Source: Paramicrosporidium saccamoebae KSL3
Lineage: Eukaryota > Fungi > Cryptomycota
NCBI GenBank assembly: GCA_002794465.1
Contig: MTSL01000165.1
Coordinates: 1 to 32,000 of the forward strand
DNA: 32,000 bases
Direction of reading: 5' to 3'
Numbering within the stretch: the first letter of the stretch is position 1; each line of letters opens with the position of its first letter. Positions 1-31,649 of the stretch are shown one piece after another. The notes beneath the pieces were generated by a model. That model did no database searches, was not told where the DNA came from, and saw only the letters and a program-made list of their open reading frames with translations. Position numbers and translations under genes: made by a program.

Positions 1-885
1 CTTCAGAGCCCTAGTAGAACCGACCATTTGAGGGGCAATATGATCAGTGTCTGCATAGAGCTTGGGAATAGACTCGATAATTTGGTCAAGAATTTTTTCT
101 GGTACGTACTTGTTTAGCCAATCACAATTCAGTGCAATTTCTCTCTTCGTGGCGGGATTAAGGAGGGAAAAGATGTTTATCGCATCATACTTGACGATGG
201 TTTCGTGCAATTCGCTACTGGAAACTGCAGAAAACCATGACTCGCTACCGATCGTAGTGTACAGTTTGTGGTTGTCTGCTTTGATACACATTTTCCAGAA
301 CTGCCCCCAATCAGATTGTTGTTGACTCCAAAATTCCTGGGCGACAATGTTTTTCCCGTAGAGCATGGCCCAATACCAGTGTTCCTGCTCCAGATCCTCC
401 CAAATATATGAATACCAAAGGCACCTCAGGACTTCGTAATATCCCATCTTTAGTGCTTCCTGCACTGCACCTTCTGGATTATTGAGGGCGGGGCACCAAG
501 TCATTAAGAACAAAGCTGAACGACAATACTCGGTCAATTTAGTATCATTGTTGGCGAGTACGCGGCGTCGTTCTAGTTCGAGTTGGAGTGCGGTAAGATC
601 CAAACTGCGACCGCTATCAATCAAAGTAGAAATCTCAGTAAGAGCATCAGCGCCTTCCAGTTCAGCATCATCAATTTCATTCTTATTCCCGGACGGCGCG
701 GCGAGGGTCAAACCATCGAAACTCGCAACCAACGTTCCAAGGCTTGAAGTTTTACCTATCTGCGACTGCGAACTGGTATGCTCCAAGTTGAATCCATCTT
801 TTTGAACGTCCTCCGGGTCGCCCTCAGAGCAATTGGCTTTTTGGGTCAAAAGTAGCAAGAACGGGATGACTGTTGACCACAACAT
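1..885 (-). CDS. Secreted ankyrin-like repeat family protein, paralog A (runs off the window start, so missing from the ORF track)
   Basis: Open frame from ATG at 885 to base 1 (295 codons, no stop): MLWSTVIPFLLLLTQKANCSEGDPEDVQKDGF...CPALNNPEGAVQEALKMGYYEVLRCL...HWYWAMLY...KADNHKLY...KYDAINIFSLL. Collinear with 1168..3282 (MLWPTAIPFLLLLTQKANCSEGDPKDIQKDGF...CPHL...CYEILKCL...HWFWSMIY...KSDNAKLY...KCDASNIFAIL). Confidence 0.85.
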   Translation of the reverse strand, partial: MLWSTVIPFLLLLTQKANCSEGDPEDVQKDGFNLEHTSSQSQIGKTSSLGTLVASFDGLTLAAPSGNKNEIDDAELEGADALTEISTLIDSGRSLDLTALQLELERRRVLANNDTKLTEYCRSALFLMTWCPALNNPEGAVQEALKMGYYEVLRCLWYSYIWEDLEQEHWYWAMLYGKNIVAQEFWSQQQSDWGQFWKMCIKADNHKLYTTIGSESWFSAVSSSELHETIVKYDAINIFSLLNPATKREIALNCDWLNKYVPEKILDQIIESIPKLYADTDHIAPQMVGSTRALK

Positions 886-1119
886 GAACTATTTTGTCGT
901 AGTGTCACGGGCGGTACCAAACGCCACGTAGCCGAGTGAGTAGAAAGTGAGAGGTAGGTTAGCTCCTAGTAGCTGCCGAGGGCTGGATCCTCCTTTATGG
1001 CTTTCTTGAAGGATTTTTAATTTGCCATATCAGATCATCCTCCAGCCCCGCTGCTTTCGACTCGCTCAATTCATCGCTGATGCATCATTGGATGGATTTC
1101 GCGCTCAATGACATGGCAT
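791..1119. repeat. Direct duplication (copy A) of the signal-peptide region plus upstream region of the ankyrin-like genes; copy B is at about 3188-3461
   Basis: 791-885 vs 3188-3282: 6 mismatches in 95 bp. Similarity continues upstream of both ATGs (GTGTCACGGGCGGTACC, CGCCACGTAGCCGAGTG, TAGCTGCCGAGGGCTG, GACTCGCTC, ATCATTGGAT, ATTTCGCGCTCAA). Copy A has an extra 53 bp (1005-1057). Confidence 0.9.
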
Positions 1120-1167
1120 TCAATCTGCCTGATAAAACTCGCATTGTTATAATTGTTATCCCGCCCT

Positions 1168-3282
1168 TTATTTGTGTAGAATTTTGCTCTTTTTATCGGC
1201 GATCCATCTTAGGGTTTCTTTGTCTTTTGAACATACCGTTGTCGGAAGAATTTTGTAGGTTCTCCACATCCATTCCAAAATGACATACTTTTCTGCTTCT
1301 GTGCATGCCGCTGCAGAATTAGAAATTTCTACATCACGCAGCAATTCTGGATTGATTTCATGTATCGCCATCAGATAGTCTATTCTACCATTCATTGCAG
1401 CCGTCTTTGCGAGTCCAATACCAATGGGATATCCTTTCCTGTGCAACCAGCGGAGAACTTGTACATGACCATACTCAGATGAGCTTGACACCATCATCGA
1501 AAGCATCTCTTTAGCATGCACCGAACTAATCCAATCGAGCACTTCCAGGTACATGTCTTCAGATAGCCGCTCAAGTGACCAATGCAGCATTTTCGAGTTT
1601 GACAGAACATTATTGGGAAGATTGTAAAAGATCCATTTCACAATCTCCAGTCTGCCTCCTCGGAGAGCAGCGACACTGTACTGATCTGCATAAGTCACAC
1701 TCTTAGTATATAAGATAGGGCGCAGCGTGGGAATTGCGTTGGGACAGATCTTATGGAACCATTGCAAAACAGGCAAGTGACCATTTCGACAAGCACGTAC
1801 CACGAATTCGTCTTTCGGTAAAGACTTGCTTGGCTGTTCATAAATCCATTGGAGAATATGAACTTGTCCAAGTACGGCGGCGACATTTGCCACACTTGTC
1901 AGTACGCGTCTATCCACGGGTGGGCCATATTTCTTGCTTAGTTTTTTCAGATCCCCATCGAATATTAGGAACAAATGCCGGACTCTGCGATTCCATTTGA
2001 TATCGTTTCGGAGTCGAAGCTGCGGAATAATCTTGTACAATCCAGGGCCTGCGTCGGGGTCACTTAACTCTTCGTTCCAATCAATCAGATGGCCGAACAT
2101 GGTAAGCATCCAAGTAACAATGTCTGGTTTCTCAAAATAGATGGCAGCAGATACCAGCCATGCGTATGGCTCCGTAGGGTCGTTTGCTATAAGCAGCCAT
2201 TTCAAGACATCCAAGTTGCCGTTCTTTATGGCAAGTCGTTCGAGACCACACCGTTGAGTAAAATTAAGATGCGCTGGGAATAGTGCTTTCAGCAATGCCA
2301 GGCAGTCATGTTTGACCAGCCAGCGTACATAAATGTTACGAATCTCCCGCTGACCTTTTTTTAGTTTCAGACTGAATTTCGGAACTTGAAAGTGGCCGGC
2401 ATGGAAGAGATATTGTAATACCTCAACCGAGCTAATCGTCTGAGGAGCAATGCGACTAGTGTCGGCGTCTAAATCCTGAATAGAAACAATGATCCAGTCA
2501 ATAATGTTTGCTGGCGCGTATTTGTTTATCAAATCGGCATTCATTGCAATCTCTCTTTGCATGTCGGGGCTGAGAATGGCGAATATATTACTCGCATCAC
2601 ATTTGATTATCACGCTGTGCAGCTCGTTCTTTGGAATGCTCTGCATAAATTGTAAATCGGTCATGTCTATGTAAAGTTTAGCATTATCCGACTTGATTAT
2701 CATGTCCCAATGTTTGAGCCAGTCAAATTCTTGCCGATCCCAAATAGATTGATCAAGAGCGGGGGTATTATAAATCATGCTCCAAAACCAATGCTGTTGT
2801 GTTGGACTTTTCCAGAGCAAGCAACGCGCAAGGCACTTTAAAATCTCGTAACATTCGGTCCTGAGTGCTGTAGGCACTGCAACTGTGAGGTTGGAGAGAT
2901 GAGGGCACCCTGTCATCAAGTTCACTGCATAACGATAGTGCTCGGCAATGGACTCTGGGTGATCTCCTGCGCGTCTACGACTCGTCTCAAGCCGAGAATT
3001 GAGTTTGCGAAGATCCTTGCTGTGATCCGTGGTAACTATTATATCTTGGTAGGAAGCAAAGTTACCATTCTCGACTTGCGTAGTAAGGGTGAGCTTAACA
3101 ACCGATTCGGTCAGAACGGGAAGACTGTCATCAGTTTCAACAGACGTGGTGCCCATCGGAGGCTGCAGTTTGGTATTTTCTATGCCAAATCCATCTTTTT
3201 GAATGTCTTTCGGGTCACCCTCAGAGCAATTGGCTTTTTGGGTCAAAAGTAGCAAGAACGGGATGGCTGTTGGCCACAACAT
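1168..3282 (-). CDS. Secreted ankyrin-like repeat family protein, paralog B (704 aa)
   Basis: Hydrophobic N-terminal signal-like segment. The C-terminal half has repeated A-x-x-x-G-x-L-x-x-L-x-W units (AIKNGNLDVLKWLL, AAVLGQVHILQWIY, ACRNGHLPVLQWFH, ALRGGRLEIVKWIF, SSEYGHVQVLRWLH). Intronless. Confidence 0.85.
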   Translation of the reverse strand: MLWPTAIPFLLLLTQKANCSEGDPKDIQKDGFGIENTKLQPPMGTTSVETDDSLPVLTESVVKLTLTTQVENGNFASYQDIIVTTDHSKDLRKLNSRLETSRRRAGDHPESIAEHYRYAVNLMTGCPHLSNLTVAVPTALRTECYEILKCLARCLLWKSPTQQHWFWSMIYNTPALDQSIWDRQEFDWLKHWDMIIKSDNAKLYIDMTDLQFMQSIPKNELHSVIIKCDASNIFAILSPDMQREIAMNADLINKYAPANIIDWIIVSIQDLDADTSRIAPQTISSVEVLQYLFHAGHFQVPKFSLKLKKGQREIRNIYVRWLVKHDCLALLKALFPAHLNFTQRCGLERLAIKNGNLDVLKWLLIANDPTEPYAWLVSAAIYFEKPDIVTWMLTMFGHLIDWNEELSDPDAGPGLYKIIPQLRLRNDIKWNRRVRHLFLIFDGDLKKLSKKYGPPVDRRVLTSVANVAAVLGQVHILQWIYEQPSKSLPKDEFVVRACRNGHLPVLQWFHKICPNAIPTLRPILYTKSVTYADQYSVAALRGGRLEIVKWIFYNLPNNVLSNSKMLHWSLERLSEDMYLEVLDWISSVHAKEMLSMMVSSSSEYGHVQVLRWLHRKGYPIGIGLAKTAAMNGRIDYLMAIHEINPELLRDVEISNSAAACTEAEKYVILEWMWRTYKILPTTVCSKDKETLRWIADKKSKILHK

Positions 3283-3929
3283 GGACTATTTCGTCGCAGT
3301 GTCACGGGCGGTACCAGACGCCACGTAGCCGAGTGGGTAGAGGGTAGGACTTAGACCGACTACTAGCTGCCGAGGGCTGATTCTCTTTTATGGCTTTTGA
3401 CTCGCTCTATTCATCGATGAAATATCATTGGATTAATTTCGCGCTCAACGAGATATGGCATCATCTAACCTGTCTGGGAGCAAACTAAAGTTTGCCCTTT
3501 GCCGAGACTACTACCGAGTACTACTGGTGAAAGACACTGAGTAAAGAGCACTGCCCTGAATAAATGAAAGAAGAGGCAATTTTAGGATATTCTTGAGCAG
3601 AGACAACATTGCAGGTCATGCTGTGATCCAAATATAGTGACTTGAGAGGAAAGTTCTGTGCTAGGCAATACCATTAAGACATGGCGGACCTATTAGCCGC
3701 ATCTGCTGTACAATTGGCCATGTTCAAGAGGGGGTCCTAATGAGGAGGATTTGGTTTTATAAATAAAGCAAGTATTTAATAGAACCAGCTTTTTAGCGCG
3801 TGGGATTACCGCATGTAGGATATAAAGACACTCCGGGATGAAGGCATTACGGATGTCTTGGTTGGCACTGAGCCAAACATGTTGTTTCCGTGAGTAACAC
3901 TGGGGATCAGCTTTGGCTTTTACTGCCAT

Positions 3930-4060
3930 TGTCACGTAGTGGGGATAAAACCACCGACGGGAAGGGGGGTTGTTCGCTGCTAATCCTAGAATGGTATGGA
4001 TACACATCTCACTGTCCTCAAATACCCAGCAACTAATCAACCCTCTGCCTCTACGTCAGA
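3930..4060 (-). mobile_element. Solo-LTR-like element, copy 1 (131 bp)
   Basis: Minus-strand ends TCTGACGTAG...TTATCCCCACTACGTGACA, flanked by the 4-bp direct repeat CCAT (3926-3929 / 4061-4064). Shares exact blocks with copy 4: GACGGGAAGGGGGGT, CTGCTAATCCTA and AACCCTCTGCCTCTACGTCA. Confidence 0.7.
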
Positions 4061-4249
4061 CCATAATAATGATCGTAGAAAGGGTAGCATGATAAATTAT
4101 GGCCTGATTATCTGTATAATCCTCAATAGTAACTGACTCTAATCATCACACGATGCAAAGTCTTTAAACTACACATTATCAACATTGCTAATTTCTAATC
4201 ATGGATGTCTTGGCATTATTACTCATTCCGGATATACCCTGGCTAACGA

Positions 4250-5725: not shown

Positions 5726-5812
5726 GAGTATGTTGGGGTATGTGGGGGAGTATAGTTGAAGTATGGTTGGAGTATGGCTGGAGTATGGTCGGGGTATGAG
5801 TATTAAAGTATG
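5726..5812 (+). repeat. Degenerate ~11-bp minisatellite (GGAGTATGGTT-like) directly after the AspRS stop codon
   Basis: GTAT cores at 5728, 5738, 5750, 5761, 5772, 5783, 5794, 5800 and 5808; spacings are mostly 10-12 nt. Confidence 0.7.
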
Positions 5813-7304: not shown

Positions 7305-7419
7305 GAATAATGGGTGGGGAGCAACAAACTGTGAGTAATCGGCAATGAATAATGGGTGAGAGAGTAACAAATAGTGAGTAATCAGCAATGAATAGTGGGT
7401 GGGTGAGTAATCAGAAAAT
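7305..7419. repeat. Degenerate ~42-43 bp tandem repeat (about 2.7 copies) upstream of the PKA-R start
   Basis: Units start at 7305, 7347 and 7390. Each begins GAATA(A/G)TGGGTG and contains GTGAGTAATC(G/A)G. Confidence 0.7.
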
Positions 7420-15592: not shown

Positions 15593-15689
15593 CTAGTCAG
15601 TGAAGCATCTCGAACCTGATCCAATAATAGTGCGCCCGCAGTCTCCAATCACATTCCTTCTTCCAACACCAATACTATCCTATGAGATT

Positions 15690-15774
15690 TGTCACGTAGT
15701 GGGGACAATGTCACGTAGCGGGGACAATGTTACGTAGCGGGGATAATATCACGTAGCGGGGATAATATCACGTA
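15690..15774 (+). repeat. 19-bp tandem repeat, about 4.5 copies
   Basis: TGTCACGTAGTGGGGACAA / TGTCACGTAGCGGGGACAA / TGTTACGTAGCGGGGATAA / TATCACGTAGCGGGGATAA / TATCACGTA. Confidence 0.95.
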
Positions 15775-15878
15775 TCTTGTCAGACGAGAGGAACACTCGT
15801 TCGCTGCTAATCTTTAAATCGCAGGGACACAAATCTTATTGTTCTTAAGTATCCAGCTAATCAATCTTCTACACCACA
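15690..15878 (-). mobile_element. Solo-LTR-like element, copy 2 (189 bp) with an amplified 3' terminus
   Basis: Minus-strand ends TGTGGTGTAG...TTGTCCCCACTACGTGACA, flanked by the 5-bp direct repeat AGATT (15685-15689 / 15879-15883). GTTCGCTGCTAATC (15799-15812) is identical to 3972-3985 in copy 1. Confidence 0.7.
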
Positions 15879-15882
15879 AGAT

Positions 15883-16374
15883 TTATTGTCGCTTGTATTT
15901 GATGAATAGAACTAGCGCCAAGATGCCAACAATAGCTAGAACTGATGCAACCACGACAATTACCCAAAAACGAAAGCTGGTGTCCCCAAATTTGCAGACA
16001 TTCTTCCACGCTGTTTTTAAATCTCCCTGGGGAAGCGACTCGACCGTATCGCGGAGATGGAAGCCCTTACAAAGATTGTTCTTGACAAAGGTGGCCTGTC
16101 CCGTGAGCTCGGCGGGGGTGACATTTTTGACCAGCATTGTGCAGTTGACAGTGTCAGAGCAGACAACCTTGCATTCGTCCAAGGTGAGCTTTTCAACGGA
16201 AATATTTGCACCGTCTTTGATTAGGCCTTTGAGTTTTGCGGTCAGTAGTTCGGGCTGTGTCGCGCTTTTCGAAGATTTCTTGTTTGTGCGAGATGGTGTC
16301 GAGTTTAGTACTGATCTCTTGCGTGCCTCTACAGCTAAAACCAAAAAGGATATAAAGAGTGTGGCAATTTTCAT
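15883..16374 (-). CDS. Orphan small type I membrane protein (about 163 aa) with a Cys-bonded ectodomain shared with its neighbour
   Basis: Start at ATG 16374 (MKIATLFISFLVLAVEA, signal-like). C-terminal TM FWVIVVVASVLAIVGILALVLFI followed by KYKRQ. Confidence 0.85.
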   Translation of the reverse strand: MKIATLFISFLVLAVEARKRSVLNSTPSRTNKKSSKSATQPELLTAKLKGLIKDGANISVEKLTLDECKVVCSDTVNCTMLVKNVTPAELTGQATFVKNNLCKGFHLRDTVESLPQGDLKTAWKNVCKFGDTSFRFWVIVVVASVLAIVGILALVLFIKYKRQ

Positions 16375-16552: not shown

Positions 16553-16738
16553 TTAGACGTAGAGGATCGATGGGGTATTTGTGTGCTAGAGTGGATCGCT
16601 TTTCCGGGTATTTGAGGACTATTAAGTTATTTGTGAGACTATAAATTGGTCGTTGGATTGACTGAATAAATTCTCATCTCGTCCCATTTCGTCTCTTCTC
16701 GCCTGACAAAGTCTGTGGTTTATCCTCACTACGCAACA
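16553..16738 (+). mobile_element. Solo-LTR-like element, copy 3 (186 bp)
   Basis: Ends TTAGACGTAG...TTATCCTCACTACGCAACA. TATAAA at 16640 and AATAAA at 16665. 16635-16675 matches 31560-31600 at 39/41, and 16573-16602 is the exact reverse complement of 27083-27112. Flanks TTAT/TAAT (3 of 4). Confidence 0.65.
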
Positions 16739-22125: not shown

Positions 22126-23153
22126 ATGTCGTATTATGGAAGTACGCCACTATCGGGTTTGTCTAATGTTTTGTATAGACAAGTTTAGCCAGAAAGATCA
22201 CGAAGTGCTTCGGAAGGCGGCAGAGGCTGGCAAGGAGGGAAAGAAGCTGCCAGAGTTTGACGAAAAGGGCCAGTTGGTCAACCCGTATATTCCCATGTAC
22301 ATTTCCAAAGCTCCTTGTATGTCGCTGTGTCTGGCTTTATCTTTTAGGGTACATGAAGACGGGAGAGGAAAAGAGCCTGGAACATCAACGGACGACTGAA
22401 AAGGTTACCGATAGCGACGCACACCATCTCCGCGGCCTAGTTTCCACTGAGCCTGCTCAAAAGTTTAGAAAGAATGCCTGTGAAAACTGCGGTGCAATCA
22501 CACACAAAAGCAAGGATTGTCTAGAGCGACCCAGGAAAAGAGGCGCCCGATGGACGGGCAAGGACATGAAGCCAGACGAGTACATACAAGAAGCCAGTTT
22601 GGGATTTGAGGGCAAACGGGACAGGTGGGCTGGATACGATGCTGATGAGTATGTTGAGGTGCTGCAGGATTGGGAGCAGGCGGAGGCTGAACGAAAGGCG
22701 GCCGTGCAGCAGGCTAGCGAGAATGGCAAATTGTCGTCAGAGGACGAGGAGCTGTATGCAGAGACTGTTGATATGCCGGGACAAAAGGTGGATCTAAAGA
22801 CGAGGATGACTGTGAGAAATCTACGACTCCGTGAGGACACGGCAAAATATTTGACAGACCTCTCTTCTGATGCTGCCCTGTACGATCCAAAGACGCGTTC
22901 AATGCGTCTACCAGAAGCAACCGGCTTTGTTCCCGAGGACCAGCAGGAAGAAGGCCGTTTTGCCTGGGAACGGCCATCTGGCAAGACTACAGACGCCACA
23001 GAGCCTACAGCCAATGTAAAGAGGAAGCGGGTCGATCCCAGGCTCGAAGAAAAATATGGTTCCGTTGCCGAACCGCTGGCCCGTGTAGAAGTGTCAGATC
23101 GATATGTCGAATATGATGGGAAGGGAAACGTGACCCGATCAGTAAAAAGATAA
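22126..23153 (+). CDS. SLU7: Pre-mRNA splicing factor SLU7 (about 319 aa), 2 introns
   Basis: Exons 22126-22141, 22179-22316 and 22348-23153 (introns 37 and 31 nt). Motifs NPYIPMYISKAPWY, zinc knuckle CENCGAITHKSKDC, EGKRDRWAGY and TVRNLRLREDTAKYL...YDPKTRSMR. Confidence 0.9.
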
Positions 23154-23168
23154 TAGATTTATTCATAC

Positions 23169-23846
23169 ATGATAATTGTTGCTGACGGCTCAGAGTTGGT
23201 GTTGAGATTGGAAGAATTTATTGTCAGTGCGGCTAATACGACCATTGCAAAAAAGGGCGCTTTTAACTTGGCGCTATCCGGAGGGTCACTGGTGGCTCTG
23301 CTGGCGCAAAGTAAGTTGGCAAAGTGCTTGGATAGTGATTACTCGCGGTGGAATATTTTTTTGGCAGATGAGCGCTGTGTTCCTGTTTCAGACGCAGAAT
23401 CGACGTTTGGTGAGTACTGTCGGAAGATGAAACAGTTTGTTCAAGAGACAACGTTTCCTGAACCCTTCTCTCAAGGCGATGCGGGAGCTTCGGCGCGAGA
23501 ATACGAGGCTTTACTTCGTCGGGCTGGCGTGATGGATCTTGTGATATTGGGCCTCGGTCCTGATGGTCACACGGCCTCTCTCTTCCCACCCGTCACGCCT
23601 GAAATGTTGACAACTGAAAATTGGGTCGAGCCCGTCTACAACTCTCCCAAGCCACCCTCCACGAGGCTTACCATGACAATCCCATACATAAGTCAAGCAG
23701 GCTTGATTTCGTTTGTCGCCACAGGATCCAATAAGATACCGGCCTTGAAACGCACAAGTTACGATCGGACTTTGCCGCCCGCAGTGCTCCCCAAGGATCG
23801 AGTTTATTGGTTCTTGGACGGCATGTCTGCTTCGGGGATCCAATAA
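23169..23846 (+). CDS. 6-phosphogluconolactonase (Sol3/PGLS-like, 225 aa)
   Basis: Motifs LALSGGS, FLADERCVP, DLVILGLGPDGHTASLFP and NSPKPPSTRLTMT. Confidence 0.93.
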   Translation: MIIVADGSELVLRLEEFIVSAANTTIAKKGAFNLALSGGSLVALLAQSKLAKCLDSDYSRWNIFLADERCVPVSDAESTFGEYCRKMKQFVQETTFPEPFSQGDAGASAREYEALLRRAGVMDLVILGLGPDGHTASLFPPVTPEMLTTENWVEPVYNSPKPPSTRLTMTIPYISQAGLISFVATGSNKIPALKRTSYDRTLPPAVLPKDRVYWFLDGMSASGIQ

Positions 23847-26274: not shown

Positions 26275-26933
26275 TCATTCGCGCATCATGTAGGAATCCA
26301 AGTCGGCATCTAGAGAGTTTGAATCTGCAGGACGCTCAGTCCTGCGCGGTGCATTACGAGCCGGCTTGCGAATGCCGGCACTATGGCGCCGAGGTGGGGG
26401 ATTGTTGGAGCGAGGATGGGACGAGGAAGGCATAATCTCAATTTGCATAGGGTATCCGTCGAGTGGCATATGGTGGAAACGGTCAGAGGCCAACAGAGTG
26501 TCGCGTCGGTTGTAAAATACCACCTCGGCAGAGCCGTTGGAACGGCCGGCGCGGTCATAATTAATCCAAACATTCTTGACCGAGCCCACTTGAGAGAATA
26601 GCTCCTAAAATATGTAAGACTCTAGCTGCTGTGTACCAAGAGGTCCTCCTTTGTTACCTTGTGGAACAGGTTAGAGACGATAATTTTCCCGTCCGAAGAG
26701 GAGCCTCGCGTATTTTCACGACGGTCGTTTCGCACAGTGAACACGTGTCGATCGGCCAGACGAGGTGGAGAGCGACGAGGGGCTGTCGACGGGCGTCGTC
26801 TTCTGGGCTGACTTTGATTTGACCGAATTACCTCGTCCAAAGCCATATCCACGGCCGATGGACGGCTTTCACGAGCGCCACCATTGTGCATGGTTTGTGC
26901 TGACGACTCCCTGGACGGCTTTATGATTATCAT
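26275..26933 (-). CDS. ALY/REF (Yra1/THOC4-like) mRNA export adaptor, 1 intron
   Basis: N-box DMALDEVI. RRM KIIVSNLFHKVTKEDLL|ELFSQVG...YDRAGRSNGSAEVVF, joined across a 32-nt intron at 26605-26636. C-box LDADLDSYM. The start could be ATG 26933, 26891 or 26846. Confidence 0.9.
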
Positions 26934-27001
26934 TTGGGCTATTCATGGGATATATTACCATGTTCTCTGTTCTTTGTGTGTCAAAGTTATCCGAGTTAAG
27001 G

Positions 27002-27246
27002 TGCCGCGTAGTGGGGATAAATAGTATGGACGGGAAGGGGGGTCTGTTTACTGCTAATCCTATAATAGTATGGATACCCAGCAAAGCGATCCACTCTAGC
27101 ACACAAATACCCGACTAACCAACCCTCTGCCTCTACGTCACATAGCCAACTAATCAATCCTCTGGCTCTACGTCACATAGTCAACTAATCAATCCTCTGG
27201 CTCTACGTCACATAGCCAACTAATCAATCCTCTGCCTCACGTCACA
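27002..27246 (-). mobile_element. Solo-LTR-like element, copy 4 (245 bp) with an amplified 5' terminus
   Basis: Minus-strand ends TGTGACGTG...TTATCCCCACTACGCGGCA, flanked by the perfect 4-bp direct repeat AAGG (26998-27001 / 27247-27250). Shares blocks with copies 1 and 3. Confidence 0.75.
27114..27246 (+). repeat. 35-bp tandem repeat, about 3.8 copies
   Basis: Unit ACTAATCAATCCTCTGGCTCTACGTCACATAGCCA, with units starting at 27114, 27149, 27184 and 27219; no spacers. Confidence 0.95.
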
Positions 27247-27502
27247 AAGGCTCTTTGTTCTCTTCTTCAGTTTTGGAAGTAGCAAGTGCGTCTAGAAGGA
27301 CAAGAATGTTCCTTTGTAGTCGCTTCTGTAATCTACTAATCAAAAACGTCAGTCCCCACATACTCGCACGTCTCTGCAACTTTTCCTTGTCGTTGAAACT
27401 CTAGAATGGCAGCAGAGAAGGCTTCATTTTCTTCCAGGATCTAGACTTTTAAGAAAACATGGCCGAGTGTACTTTGGACATGGCATCGGCAGTCAATGTC
27501 AT
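27242..27502 (-). CDS. SS18/GIF-like SSXT-domain protein (65 aa), 2 introns; absent from the ORF track
   Basis: Exons 27502-27473, 27440-27364 and 27332-27242. Introns 27441-27472 (GTACAC..TAG, 32 nt) and 27333-27363 (GTATGT..CTGAC..TAG, 31 nt). Product MTLTADAMSKILEENEAFSAAILEFQRQGKVAETCELQKRLQRNILVLLDALATSKTEEENKEPL matches the SSXT pattern L(D/E)EN..LI..I.E.Q..GK..E....Q.RLQRNL. Confidence 0.8.
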
Positions 27503-27770: not shown

Positions 27771-29033
27771 CTATTGGATTGACCATTGCAGAGAAACCTT
27801 GACAAACGGATCTTGATCACCATTGGCCATATTAAGGGCAGTCCATAGCTCGGCTTCTTCGGCAGATTCCATCGTTGATGACGCCGCACTCTGTAGTGCA
27901 GCCGCAATATCAATGGGGGAAATTCCAGGTAGATGCAGCTGCTCTAGGTTTTGCAGCAGCGCAAGGCGAAGCTTCTTTTCGCCCTTGGTAGAGTCTTTCC
28001 CTGCGCCGGGCTTTAGGGTGAGAGAGAGGAAATAGGGCGGAAGTCCATATTGCAATACACTCTCCACAAACAGACGCAGTACCTTCAAGTGCATCCAGGC
28101 GGAGAATAATTCACCAAAATTTGTCTTTAGCAGACGAACAAGGCTGGCCCATTGAGCCTTCATGTCACTTTGCATAGCCTGATCAGCCTCCTGGATCTCC
28201 TGTTGACGGTTCTCGTCGTAGTCGTACTCGCGAACCGTAAAGCGCTCTGCACTTGCAGCTTTAATAAACTCGTCCTTGACCTTGTTAAAGACGGTTACAT
28301 TGTACAGGGCATATCCATCCTCCTCTGCCAGGAGACGAGACGAGCGGGGGACAACCATTTCAGAAAGATGCTCATATATGGCCTCCCACCGTTTCTTTTC
28401 TGGAGCGGTAACTACCACCAACAGAGTCTGCATGAATTCAGAGGGCTCAATAAAGTCTTTCGCCGTGACTAAGGAGCCGAGGTCCTTGGTGAGAAAGGTT
28501 CCCGTATTTTTGCGCTCTGCTGCGGCAACAGAGGACTTTGCTTGGCTATATGCATTAAGGCGCGCCTTTAGCAAGCTTTCAATCTGCTGCGTCTCTTGCA
28601 CAATAGTGTCGGCTATTTCGGTAACAGTCTTGTCAGTCCGGTACTTCATCACGTTCCACTGGAAGGACTTTACATAGGCCTCGGGTGTGGCCACTTCATT
28701 GACTACCAGGCTGCTACGGAGCTGCTCGGAATCCCCATTCAATAGCCCGCGAAAGTTGGAAACCAGTCTGTTGACAGTTGTCTCGAGTACTGGATCCATT
28801 TTGGAAAGGTCCTCACCGGCTGCTACTAGCGAATCCAAGGTCCCCACCTTGAACTCTGGAAAGGCAAACTGGTGAACCTCGGCAACGTCGCTGCTCACCG
28901 AGAGTTTGTCTTTGAGGAACGAATAAAGAATGTTGCGATCCTCATCAACCAGCGAGTTGTTGTGAGTGACCACTTCTCTGTGCTTTAAAGGAAGTGCCAA
29001 TAACCAAAACATTGACGAAGAGCTACCACTCAT
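27771..29033 (-). CDS. VMA5: V-type H+-ATPase subunit C (about 420 aa)
   Basis: Likely start is ATG 29033 or 29012 (MFWLLALP). Motifs FPEFKVGTLDSL, FQWNVMKY, VVPRSS, LYNVTVF and WMHLKVLRLFVESVLQYGLP. Confidence 0.95.
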   Translation of the reverse strand: MSGSSSSMFWLLALPLKHREVVTHNNSLVDEDRNILYSFLKDKLSVSSDVAEVHQFAFPEFKVGTLDSLVAAGEDLSKMDPVLETTVNRLVSNFRGLLNGDSEQLRSSLVVNEVATPEAYVKSFQWNVMKYRTDKTVTEIADTIVQETQQIESLLKARLNAYSQAKSSVAAAERKNTGTFLTKDLGSLVTAKDFIEPSEFMQTLLVVVTAPEKKRWEAIYEHLSEMVVPRSSRLLAEEDGYALYNVTVFNKVKDEFIKAASAERFTVREYDYDENRQQEIQEADQAMQSDMKAQWASLVRLLKTNFGELFSAWMHLKVLRLFVESVLQYGLPPYFLSLTLKPGAGKDSTKGEKKLRLALLQNLEQLHLPGISPIDIAAALQSAASSTMESAEEAELWTALNMANGDQDPFVKVSLQWSIQ

Positions 29034-29266
29034 CCTTGCTACCTTTGTCGCCGGGGGTGGGTAGGTAGGAGGCCGGCCATGCGGAAATGTAGGCATGGTA
29101 TGCCGACACGCTACAATCCCCAGTGACAGAATCTTTTGAGAATGCGAGGGGCTCTATAAAGTAACTGCGACCGTGTCGGTAGTGGCTGATATTATTGGCT
29201 TGCACTATATTCCATTGCGGCTTTGACTGCCAAACACTCTGATTATCCGACAACAACGATCCAACT

Positions 29267-31345
29267 TTATTTGTCTAATGATTCCGCCTGGTAAAGTTTT
29301 TTCGCCACCCACTCTTCGACTCTATTGTACTCGCGCATGGTTGGCAGCATATGACACGTCTTCCACAGCCAATCCAAAACGTTGTGCTTCCACACTGTCT
29401 GACCCCTGATCGCTGCTAAATTAACAACCTTCATAGTGCACACCAGCGATGGATCAATGGTGTAGATTGCCTTTAGAATTTCCACCTTACTGTAAGTTAC
29501 GGCCAACTCTACAATATTTGGAGTTATGACCAATCCTTGCTCATGCAGCCACTGGAATACTTTTACGTGGCCCCAATAAATAGCATCCCGCAATAATTCC
29601 GAGTCAACCTTGATCGTGCTCATTGATGCGATCCATTTGAGAACGCATAACTGTGCTTCCTCGGGTACATGGTTTGAATTTGAATAGATGTCTCTCAAGT
29701 TTGGTAGCGCGTCCTTGAAAAGGTTTGCCAATATCCATTCCATGAGGTCCTGATTGTTGTGCATGGCGGCGTACAGGAGGCACTTTGACGTGTTAATGCC
29801 AGGGAGTTTGTCTGTAGGTACTATTCGGGTGCTGTCAGTGTTGAAAATCCAGTTCAAAACGAGAAAATGGCCCTTTTCACAGGCCTTTTCCACAGAATAA
29901 TTGTTGGGAAGAATTACAAATCTGCCCCAAATCCATTCAAGAATGTCAATATATCCACCCACTGCTGCACAATTTGCCACCTCCTGCTTCCATTTATCAG
30001 AAATCTCTGGATCTGCAAGTGCATTCTGCACTTTTTGTAGATTGCCTTTTGACACTACTAATAAAACGGCTACTTCGGGTTGTAGAGTGATACCGAGCTC
30101 GTCTCGAAGAGATTTGATAATTTCATGAGAGCTGGTATTCTTGTAGCAAAGAGAAATCACGGAATCCCAGTTAATCTGATATCCAAACTCGGTGAACAGC
30201 CATTTGACAGTCTCCCAATGTCTAGATTGGATGGCGCTGCTCACGGATAACAATGATGGGCCTCTTGTCTTTTTTCCAGTCCGAGTCGTCGTTTGTTCCT
30301 GCTTCTGCATGTGCAACCACTTTAGCACTTCAAGACTGCCTTTTTTGACGGCATAGCTATAAAGGATGCTATAGCTGTACTTGAAATTAGGATTCTCTTG
30401 GAACATTTCTTGTAATAATGATAAACACTTGTGCTCAACAAGCCAGAGTGCACAGTCCGTATGGATTGACAAGGAGTTGTCTTTTGATTGAAGACAGAAC
30501 TTTGGGATTAGGCTGTAGTCGATATGGAAGAGATCTTGGAGGATTTTGGAAGACATGACAGTATGAGGGGGGATTACCTGGTTAATTACACGCCTTGACG
30601 CATGGTTAATCACCAAATTAATATCATTTTCAGTTCCCCAAGCCACGGCAGGGTGGAATTGAGAAAGAATATTAGCCGCGTCAAACATGATGATGCAGTC
30701 GCGCAAATCGTCTTGGGAAATGTCCTCAAAATACGGCTCACGACTGATTTCATCAAAGAGTTTAGCATTGTCGACCTTGACGATCATTCTCCAGAACTCA
30801 CTCCATTCAAACTCTTGTTGAGCCCATAAGGTAGTATTAAAGACTGGAGTTTCATAGATCTTGGCCCAGAACCAGTGTTTTTGCTCCTGGTCCTTCCAAG
30901 TGAAACAACACGCAAGACAGTGCAGGACTCCATAACAGTCAGCTTCAAATGCTTGCTGCACTGTCTCTTCGACATTGTCTAGCGCGGGGCAGGCGGCCAT
31001 TATGGCTCTCGCGTCCCGATAAAATGTTTCGATGCGCTCAAAATCGTCGCCTGCCTTTTCACGACGCTTAGCAAGACTTGATTCAAGGGATTGAACACTC
31101 GGGTTAGTGTTTGCAAAATCAACCATTTTACCCAACGGAGTGAGGGTCAAGTCATTGACGCCTGAAACAACAAGCTCGATAGAATTGGGATCACCATTTT
31201 GCTTGGTGGTATCCGGTAGCTGAAACTCTGTACTGTTCGTCCAACCCTTGCTAAGGCCGCCCGAGCCCGTTCCTCGGCTCAGGAGTGACAACAGCGAAAT
31301 TGTTGTGGGCCACAAGATGCGTTGAACTATGCCAGAGAGTCTCAT
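29267..31345 (-). CDS. Secreted ankyrin-like repeat family protein, paralog C (about 690 aa; ORF open to 31384)
   Basis: Collinear with paralogs A and B (CPAL, CYGVLHCL, HWFWAKIY, KVDNAKLF, FDAANI). C-terminal repeats AVKKGSLEVLKWLH, AAVGGYIDILEWIW, ACEKGHFLVLNWIF and AIYWGHVKVFQWLH. Confidence 0.85.
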   Translation of the reverse strand: MRLSGIVQRILWPTTISLLSLLSRGTGSGGLSKGWTNSTEFQLPDTTKQNGDPNSIELVVSGVNDLTLTPLGKMVDFANTNPSVQSLESSLAKRREKAGDDFERIETFYRDARAIMAACPALDNVEETVQQAFEADCYGVLHCLACCFTWKDQEQKHWFWAKIYETPVFNTTLWAQQEFEWSEFWRMIVKVDNAKLFDEISREPYFEDISQDDLRDCIIMFDAANILSQFHPAVAWGTENDINLVINHASRRVINQVIPPHTVMSSKILQDLFHIDYSLIPKFCLQSKDNSLSIHTDCALWLVEHKCLSLLQEMFQENPNFKYSYSILYSYAVKKGSLEVLKWLHMQKQEQTTTRTGKKTRGPSLLSVSSAIQSRHWETVKWLFTEFGYQINWDSVISLCYKNTSSHEIIKSLRDELGITLQPEVAVLLVVSKGNLQKVQNALADPEISDKWKQEVANCAAVGGYIDILEWIWGRFVILPNNYSVEKACEKGHFLVLNWIFNTDSTRIVPTDKLPGINTSKCLLYAAMHNNQDLMEWILANLFKDALPNLRDIYSNSNHVPEEAQLCVLKWIASMSTIKVDSELLRDAIYWGHVKVFQWLHEQGLVITPNIVELAVTYSKVEILKAIYTIDPSLVCTMKVVNLAAIRGQTVWKHNVLDWLWKTCHMLPTMREYNRVEEWVAKKLYQAESLDK

Positions 31346-31453
31346 TATCCGACCGCGCCACTTCCTTTCCAACCACCCATCCACTCGGCGGATTACATCT
31401 GATGGACCTATACACTGCTATTGGACGGGTTGATCAGGGCATCTTTGTATATG

Positions 31454-31649
31454 TGTGACGTAGAAGACTGATTAGCATGTCTTGTGGAAATAGTTCCCTA
31501 GTTTGGAGAAGGGATAACCAGAGCAATCGATGAAGGATAATGAGACCTTTACCATTTGGGAGACTATAAAAGGGTCGTTGGATTGACTGAATAAATTCTC
31601 TTCTCTTCTCGCCTAAACTGGGCCGTGGTATTATCCCCACTACGCGACA
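31454..31649 (+). mobile_element. Solo-LTR-like element, copy 5 (196 bp)
   Basis: Ends TGTGACGTAG...TTATCCCCACTACGCGACA. TATAAA at 31565 and AATAAA at 31590; 39/41 match to copy 3. Flanks TATG/TAGG (3 of 4). Confidence 0.7.

Follow-up and report, generated by a model that had tools for sequence, protein, structure and literature searches.

Insertions of transposable elements that replace a stop codon, a 3' untranslated region or a polyadenylation site are a general phenomenon in animals, plants and bacteria. Among bacteria, the Correia/NEMIS elements and the Rickettsia palindromic elements are short, non-coding, hairpin-forming repeats that occupy the short spacers of compact genomes. Here we describe a short repeat family of Paramicrosporidium saccamoebae, an intranuclear parasite of amoebae belonging to the Rozellomycota, in a stretch of 32,000 nucleotides (the window) whose coordinates are those of record MTSL01000165.1 in genome assembly GCA_002794465.1. 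One member of the family, copy 4, very probably inserted within the stop codon of a small SS18-like gene and supplied the stop codon that the gene uses at present. As in the known stop-replacing insertions, the 3' flank now begins with the element, which adds one residue and then an in-frame stop. In contrast to them, the break lies inside the stop codon itself, the spacers between genes are only about 100 nt long, and two further members of the family are positioned at or in stop codons. The likeness to the Correia/NEMIS and Rickettsia palindromic elements is one of analogy, in that these also often abut or overlap the ends of open reading frames (ORFs) and can carry transcription signals, but they belong to another domain of life and differ in their termini and transposition chemistry, and the P. 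saccamoebae element does not form a hairpin.

With respect to its ends, the family is comparable with several described groups. TGTNR termini combined with 4-bp or 5-bp target-site duplications are known for the long terminal repeats (LTRs) of Gypsy elements and for Ginger1 and Ginger2 (PMC2836005). The terminal inverted repeats (TIRs) of the Ginger elements measure about 40-270 bp in Ginger1 and 50-180 bp in Ginger2, and their preferred targets are CCGG/CCGT and RTATAY, respectively (PMC2836005). The IS481EU elements have TGT..ACA termini, short TIRs mostly below 50 bp, 4-bp duplications and non-autonomous families; they have been reported from parabasalids only, where duplications of about 15 and about 25 bp also occur (PMC10045372). 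The genome paper of P. saccamoebae gives a gene space of more than 76% and a repeated content of 0.53%, mostly simple repeats, with transposable elements unmentioned, and our literature search found no description of transposable elements in this species.

The split stop codon and the element family

The features at the junction of copy 4 with the SS18-like gene are the following.

27247-27250, minus strand: gene-side target-site duplication, CCTT
27245-27247, minus strand: added Leu codon TTG, made up of the final T of the duplication and the TG of element bases 1-2
27242-27244, minus strand: present stop codon TGA of the SS18-like gene, element bases 3-5
27002-27246, minus strand: element copy 4, 245 bp, non-coding, with boundaries common to the seven other copies
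27107-27246, minus strand: array of 4.0 units of 35 nt each (first unit 34 nt), starting at element base 1
26998-27001, minus strand: distal target-site duplication, CCTT
26996-26998, minus strand: former stop codon TAA, displaced by 249 nt to a downstream position, with a T that also ends the distal CCTT

On the gene side, the minus strand reads ...AAA GAG CCT T/TG TGA CGT GAG G..., with the element starting at 27246 (slashes mark the borders). On the far side, 249 bases on and past the element end at 27002, it reads ...CGCGGCA/CCTT/AACTCGG, that is ...CTACGCGGCA/CCTT/AACTCGG. Copy 4 begins with TGTGACGT... at its 5' end and finishes with ...CTACGCGGCA at its 3' end, and the direct repeat that flanks it has a maximal length of exactly 4 nt. 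When the flanks are joined with one CCTT, the sequence becomes ...AAA GAG CCT TAA, indicating that the C-terminus of the SS18-like protein changed from KEP* to KEPL*. An earlier note on this DNA had claimed a mobile element with a 4-bp duplication, a present stop codon lying inside it and an empty site reading CCT TAA; its observation on copy 4 is confirmed by the flank join, by the exact 4-nt repeat and by ends that are shared by eight copies. The locus offers a clean, base-exact case of a transposable element splitting and replacing a stop codon. The array comprises the first 140 bases of copy 4, and each of its 35-nt units begins with TGTGACGT, the terminal motif, and contains TGACGT.

No gene is called at the SS18-like locus in the public record. 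The locus was also read in three relatives on metagenome/Logan contigs, L002 (JGI 3300036987), L006 (Logan SRR28640814) and L008, in which V-ATPase subunit C is 66-70% identical. The gene is composed as follows.

27473-27502, minus strand: exon 1, with the ATG at 27500-27502; exon and intron position conserved in L002
27441-27472, minus strand: intron 1, 32 nt, GTACAC...TCTAG
27364-27440, minus strand: exon 2, core of the SNH/SSXT domain
27333-27363, minus strand: intron 2, 31 nt, GTATGT...TAGTAG
27242-27332, minus strand: exon 3, including the element-supplied stop codon

The three exons joined measure 198 nt and encode 65 amino acids, and the product matches the Pfam family SSXT (PF05030) with an E value of 2.7e-11 and 43.3 bits (cutoff 26.2) over profile positions 5-58 of 62. 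The gene order V-ATPase C, SS18-like, Aly/REF is the same in L002, L006 and L008, and exon 2 shows 69-81% identity in these relatives. Both introns are found at the same positions and in the same phase in L002, with the intron positions conserved in three related taxa. The product of the last exon has 30, 30 and 46 amino acids in the relatives, compared with 29 here now and 28 at the empty site. Because of the SSXT match, the conserved synteny, the introns and the exon lengths, the reading frame at 27242-27256 is well founded. The hidden SS18-like gene that the earlier note had modelled is thereby validated, although it is missing from the gene calls on record. Independent support for an insertion at its stop codon comes from comparison of the spacer with that of the relatives: the SS18-like stop and the Aly/REF start are 350 nt apart here versus 100, 110 and 185 nt in the three relatives, an excess equal to the element plus its duplication, without which 101 nt would separate them.

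Similarity searches with individual copies located eight copies across the 46.7 kb of P. saccamoebae sequence examined, which consists of contig MTSL01000165.1 and contig MTSL01000073.1 (L009), the latter being the one additional contig that a search with ankyrin paralogues yielded. Five copies are in the window and three on L009, amounting to about one per 6 kb and about 3% of the sequence, and all are in intergenic spacers. In addition to copy 4, the family consists of the following members.

3930-4060, minus strand: copy 1 (131 bp), flanked by ATGG at 4061-4064 and 3926-3929
15690-15878, minus strand: copy 2 (189 bp), flanked by AGATT at 15685-15689 and 15879-15883
16553-16738, plus strand: copy 3 (186 bp), flanks TTAT/TAAT, matching at three of four positions
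31454-31649, plus strand: copy 5 (196 bp), flanks TATG/TAGG, matching at three of four positions
L009 6961-7186, minus strand: copy 6, no recognisable duplication
L009 6739-6900, plus strand: copy 7, no recognisable duplication
L009 8513-8657, minus strand: copy 8, no recognisable duplication

The copies range from 131 to 245 bp in length, have no ORF conserved between them and show a pairwise likeness of 65-80%, with two sequence groups (copies 1, 2 and 4 versus copies 3, 5, 6, 7 and 8). They have in common a TGTGACGTAG-type start at the 5' end, and the well-preserved copies begin T(G/C)TGACGTAGAG-like and end in ...CCACTACG(T/C)G(A/G)CA (...CTACG(T/C)G(A/G)CA). Copy 4 starts with TGTGA and ends with GGCA, whereas copies 2 and 5 start with TGTG and copies 1, 2, 3, 5, 6 and 8 end with ACA. 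The element ends form an imperfect 13-bp inverted repeat, with 10 of 13 positions matching in copy 1 and 9 of 13 in copy 5; between the 5' end of the fourth unit of copy 4 and the 3' end of copy 1 the match is 11 of 13, with no similarity beyond these 13 bp. The copies cease to be similar exactly at the terminal motifs, with no relation between their flanks. Copies 4 (CCTT), 1 (ATGG) and 2 (AGATT, or GATT plus one chance base) have perfect flanking repeats, copies 3 and 5 a three-of-four match, and copies 6, 7 and 8 none. The chance of a 4-nt flank identity in the window is about 0.0045 (about 0.45% of positions), and the probability of at least three perfect duplications among eight copies is 5e-6, or 3e-3 with 1 nt of slack at each end. 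Because of the shared ends, the unrelated flanks and these duplication statistics, the repeats are the product of a mobile element whose insertion duplicates 4 bp of the target site. P. saccamoebae, published at a repeated content of 0.53%, carries a diverged family of short elements whose ends are of the integrase type. The family seems undescribed but of a known kind, and stop codon replacement seems a neat but ordinary outcome of transposition.

The tandem arrays of the copies are in exact register with the element termini. The four 35-nt units of copy 4 run from base 1, and the array of copy 2 (15690-15774) has 4.5 units of 19 nt and ends at the last element base, forming a 3' terminal unit. 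Under a random slippage phase, the joint chance of these two registers is about 1 in 665. Copy 3 has two older 5' tandem units.

No convincing copy was found in 35.8 kb from at least four related taxa, searched with the terminal motifs and with whole copies, and the copy 4 insertion is therefore lineage-specific. The loci of the relatives are without dispersed short repeats. An intergenic segment of L006 (672-788) has marginal similarity to copy 2 (E 0.014), includes the motifs GGATTGATCAGCTG and GTGTCACGTGACG, and may be related to the family in decayed form. When metagenomes were scanned with a 21-mer taken from the core that copies 3, 5 and 6 conserve, two matches were returned, both rejected as chance, with no similarity beyond 21-22 bases.

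Copy 4 is thus very probably a non-coding, non-autonomous mobile element, from a family specific to P. saccamoebae, that integrated across CCTT and in doing so split and replaced the stop codon of the SS18-like gene. Several points weigh against this interpretation. The predicted empty allele, CCTTAA, was not seen in any relative, those with the locus being too distant and their C-terminal tails unalignable. The closer relatives are uninformative on the empty site, their contigs being too short or without the SS18 3' end: the relative with an 89% identical V-ATPase C is represented by a contig of 1,072 nt that ends 131 nt past the gene, and the contig of the closest Aly/REF relative (57%) begins 237 nt upstream of the gene, with no SS18 end on it. 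The splice sites and the 3' end of the SS18-like gene are predictions from sequence. The copies show no more than 65-80% likeness to one another, and a duplication is not recognisable at three of the eight. Finally, because neither an autonomous partner nor paired copies were found in the 46.7 kb, an integrase-type mechanism rests on the end signatures.

The alternative to an insertion is that the shared sequence is an intergenic regulatory module kept by conservation, or that the gene model is in error, with coincidence behind both the CCTT repeat and the TAA. We consider this highly improbable. It would fit the intergenic position of all copies and their promoter-like and poly(A)-like motifs, and, given a T at codon position 1, the next two bases make a stop by chance in about 3/16 of cases. 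However, it leaves three perfect flanking duplications to chance (P = 5e-6 to 3e-3), the copies occur in both orientations, the family is absent from the orthologous spacers of the relatives, which are shorter, and the gene model has independent support.

The bases at the two junctions show that copy 4 integrated through a 4-nt staggered cut across CCTT, a target whose last T had been the first base of the TAA stop of a 64-amino acid SS18-like (SSXT-domain) gene. CCTT was duplicated when the stagger was repaired. The frame now continues through CCT, a Leu codon made of T and the element's TG, and the element's TGA, with the old TAA and the original 3' flank pushed 249 nt downstream to a position beside Aly/REF. 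Two properties may explain why copy 4 was tolerated: the 5' end of the element closes all three reading frames within at most eight codons, and a break at the very start of a spacer of about 100 nt would spare the upstream region of the neighbour. An introner-like (intron-generating) interpretation of copy 4 was rejected, as the stop codon comes before any donor-like site and the local introns are 31-32 nt long.

Class of the element

Both termini of the element fit TGTNR...YNACA, the imperfect TIR is 13 bp long and the duplication 4 bp, from which we infer an end signature of the type left by retroviral-type (DDE) integrases and their transposase relatives. Gypsy elements, Ginger1/2 and IS481EU all depend on enzymes of this group. 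Within this class, we lean slightly toward solo LTRs over a Ginger- or IS481EU-like non-autonomous DNA element. The copies would tentatively be remnants left by LTR-LTR recombination of Ty3/Gypsy-type retrotransposons, the internal parts having been purged from the streamlined genome. With Ty3/Gypsy solo LTRs the copies share the TGTNR...YNACA termini, a short TIR and a 4-5-bp duplication, the 4 bp found here lying within the 4-6 bp expected of LTR insertions. They also tend to be located in gene-adjacent spacers, and they share 5' tandem repeats and an asymmetric body in which TATA-like and AATAAA-like motifs occupy a single strand. Symmetry in the element is limited to the imperfect 13-bp TIR, and its DNA fold is weaker than that of shuffled sequences (minimum free energy of -16.2 kcal/mol versus a shuffle mean of -21, z = +1.47), with no fold-back. 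In copies 3 and 5, TATAAA precedes a same-strand AATAAA by 25 nt, counted from start to start; in copy 7 TATAAA is followed by AGTAAA, and copy 4 has AGTAAA only. These motifs are compatible with a predicted U3-R-U5 layout, in which the tandem TGACGT-bearing units would be on the 5', U3-like, side.

Other features of the family fit LTRs less well. There is no pair of copies around an internal region and no full-length member with two direct LTRs enclosing a primer-binding site, a polypurine tract and gag/pol in the 46.7 kb, a weak argument given that only two contigs are covered, and no gag/pol-like ORF was found in the same sequence. The 0.53% of repeats in the genome paper, mostly simple, is also unfavorable, as is the density of about one copy per 6 kb. 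The base lengths of about 130-225 bp without arrays are very short for LTRs, and tandem repetition of the extreme terminal motif, as in copies 2, 3 and 4, is unusual in LTRs.

The same observations bear on a second possibility, to which we give appreciable but not preponderant weight, namely that the copies are non-autonomous DNA transposons resembling MITEs (miniature inverted-repeat transposable elements), moved by a Ginger- or IS481EU-like integrase-related transposase. The absence of a paired copy or gag/pol remnant and the low published repeat content speak for this possibility. The copies are short, non-coding, locally dense and near genes, and their subterminal tandem units, each with the terminal motif, are like repeated transposase-binding sites. 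The end and duplication signature is that of Ginger1/2 and IS481EU alike. Ginger1 and Ginger2 (TDD) have TGTNR termini, 4-bp duplications (5 bp in TDD-4/5) and an integrase-related chemistry (PMC2836005), but the TIR of 13 bp, with 10-11 matches at best, is below the Ginger lengths, and the targets at the three informative sites (CCTT, ATGG and ATCT) are neither CCGG/CCGT nor RTATAY. The agreement is closer with IS481EU, including Banshee of parabasalids, with its TGT...ACA ends, TIRs mostly below 50 bp, 4-bp duplications and abundant non-autonomous families (PMC10045372). Against this, IS481EU is reported from parabasalids only, and its duplications of about 15 and 25 bp are not seen in P. 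saccamoebae. For both groups, the lack of hairpin potential and of a transposase gene in the 46.7 kb is unfavorable.

The family has the generic attributes of MITEs, being short and non-coding, with a TIR, a duplication and many copies; a classic hairpin MITE was rejected on account of the missing fold-back (z = +1.47). An origin from a short interspersed nuclear element, a tRNA or another RNA gene was also rejected, with no ARAGORN or Rfam match and with a TIR and a fixed 4-bp duplication but no tail.

Position of the copies relative to genes

Of the eight copies, seven are downstream of the 3' end of a gene, five of them in sense orientation to that gene, and three copies (4, 2 and 6) touch or overlap a stop codon in sense orientation. 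For copy 2, the earlier note had described a duplication overlapping the TAA of a 163-amino acid gene (15883-15885, minus strand). The position at the 3' edge of this codon and the sense orientation stand, with the 5' end of the copy 0-1 nt after the TAA, whereas an overlap, of one base, exists only if the duplication is 5 nt long; with 4 nt, the duplication begins directly after the stop. Copy 6, also in sense, includes the end of an annotated 368-amino acid gene (L009 7168-8508), namely its final five codons and its TGA stop. It has no recognisable flanking duplication, so that the end of this gene before the insertion cannot be deduced. Copy 8 begins 36 nt beyond the stop of a leucyl-tRNA synthetase-like ORF, and its other end is 4 nt short of the annotated ATG of the following gene. 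It fills most of the 185-nt spacer, and if this ATG is real, the upstream signals of the next gene would have to be in the element. Copy 7 starts 160 nt after a stop. Copy 3 is antisense to its flanking genes and 80 nt from the stop of a 627-amino acid gene, copy 5 is antisense in the spacer between two ankyrin paralogues, and copy 1 has an ankyrin gene and the aspartyl-tRNA synthetase (AspRS) gene on its two sides, transcribed divergently.

Under a null model of uniform insertion into about 6.6 kb of element-free intergenic DNA, the probability that at least two of seven intergenic copies are within 5 nt of a stop is about 0.009, with values of 0.004-0.03 when the cutoff is set between 3 and 10 nt; this is a post hoc test on eight copies with approximate gene models. 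Translation into the 5' end of copies 1, 4 and 5 meets a stop in every one of the three frames after no more than eight codons, for which the random expectation is 3%, and sense insertions at the very end of a coding region would therefore cost few residues. The explanation we favour for the clustering at stop codons, with about even confidence, is the survival of harmless insertions in a very compact genome. Clustering by chance is unlikely, though not negligibly so.

Active targeting of the stop codon or 3' boundary of genes in sense orientation is likewise doubtful. It would account for copy 4 splitting a stop, copy 2 starting 0-1 nt after one and copy 6 containing one, as well as for the five sense copies among the seven downstream of genes and the P value of about 0.009. 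However, that value carries the limits of a post hoc test on eight copies and rough gene models, copies 1, 3, 5 and 7 lie away from stops, the 5:2 orientation split is not significant, the target sequences have no common motif, and the same pattern would be expected from selection in 100-nt spacers. The link between the family and stop codons is suggestive and not proof of targeting. A bolder reading, which we regard as improbable, would make the element a mobile gene-end cassette that prefers the stop boundary in sense orientation, bringing all-frame stops and a poly(A) signal to the upstream gene and promoter elements (TATA, TGACGT arrays) to the downstream gene. Such a cassette would have rebuilt a sizeable share of the spacers in an ultra-compact genome reported as nearly repeat-free. 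The genome-wide reality of the association is a more interesting question than the replacement of one stop. If it holds, the family would be a useful model of the persistence of mobile DNA in intergenic spacers, and of their remodelling by it, in a strongly compacted eukaryotic genome from the base of the microsporidian lineage.

Neighbouring genes and other features of the window

The SS18-like gene is flanked by the following genes.

27771-29096, minus strand: V-ATPase subunit C
26275-26891, minus strand: Aly/REF export factor gene, downstream neighbour, its start 101 nt from the former stop with the element discounted

The Aly/REF model of the record (187 amino acids) implies an intron of 53 nt (26605-26657). 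An alternative intron of the local type, 32 nt long (26605-26636, GTACAC...TTTTAG), would retain seven more residues of the RNA recognition motif (VTKEDLL). The spacer between V-ATPase C and the SS18-like gene measures about 1.2 kb in L002 (3490-4720) versus 269 nt in the window, and the only called ORFs within it in L002 are small and on the opposite strand.

The 163-amino acid gene next to copy 2, which would encode a secreted or transmembrane protein (15883-16374, minus strand), is bracketed by the inverted copies 2 and 3, both with their 5' ends toward the gene. A composite element made of these two copies around the gene was rejected, as the outer flanks are unmatched and copy 2 has its own duplication. 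The C-terminal part of the product of this gene is 24% identical to that of the neighbouring 627-amino acid gene.

Elsewhere in the window, an SLU7-like ORF and a 6-phosphogluconolactonase-like gene illustrate how short a spacer the genome tolerates, the stop of the former being only 15 nt from the ATG of the latter (23153-23169). Two tandem repeats are intergenic and have no relation to the element family: an 11-nt repeat immediately after the AspRS stop (5726-5798) and a 43-nt repeat just upstream of the start of the protein kinase A (PKA) regulatory subunit (7305-7410). Ankyrin-repeat paralogues with signal peptides are arranged in tandem pairs at both ends of the window (1-1130, 1168-3282, 29267-31384 and beyond 32180, L001 48-917). 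The 459-amino acid model P0077 of the record looks chimeric, running from the C-terminus of one ankyrin paralogue across the spacer that holds copy 5 into the 5' part of the ORF that follows.

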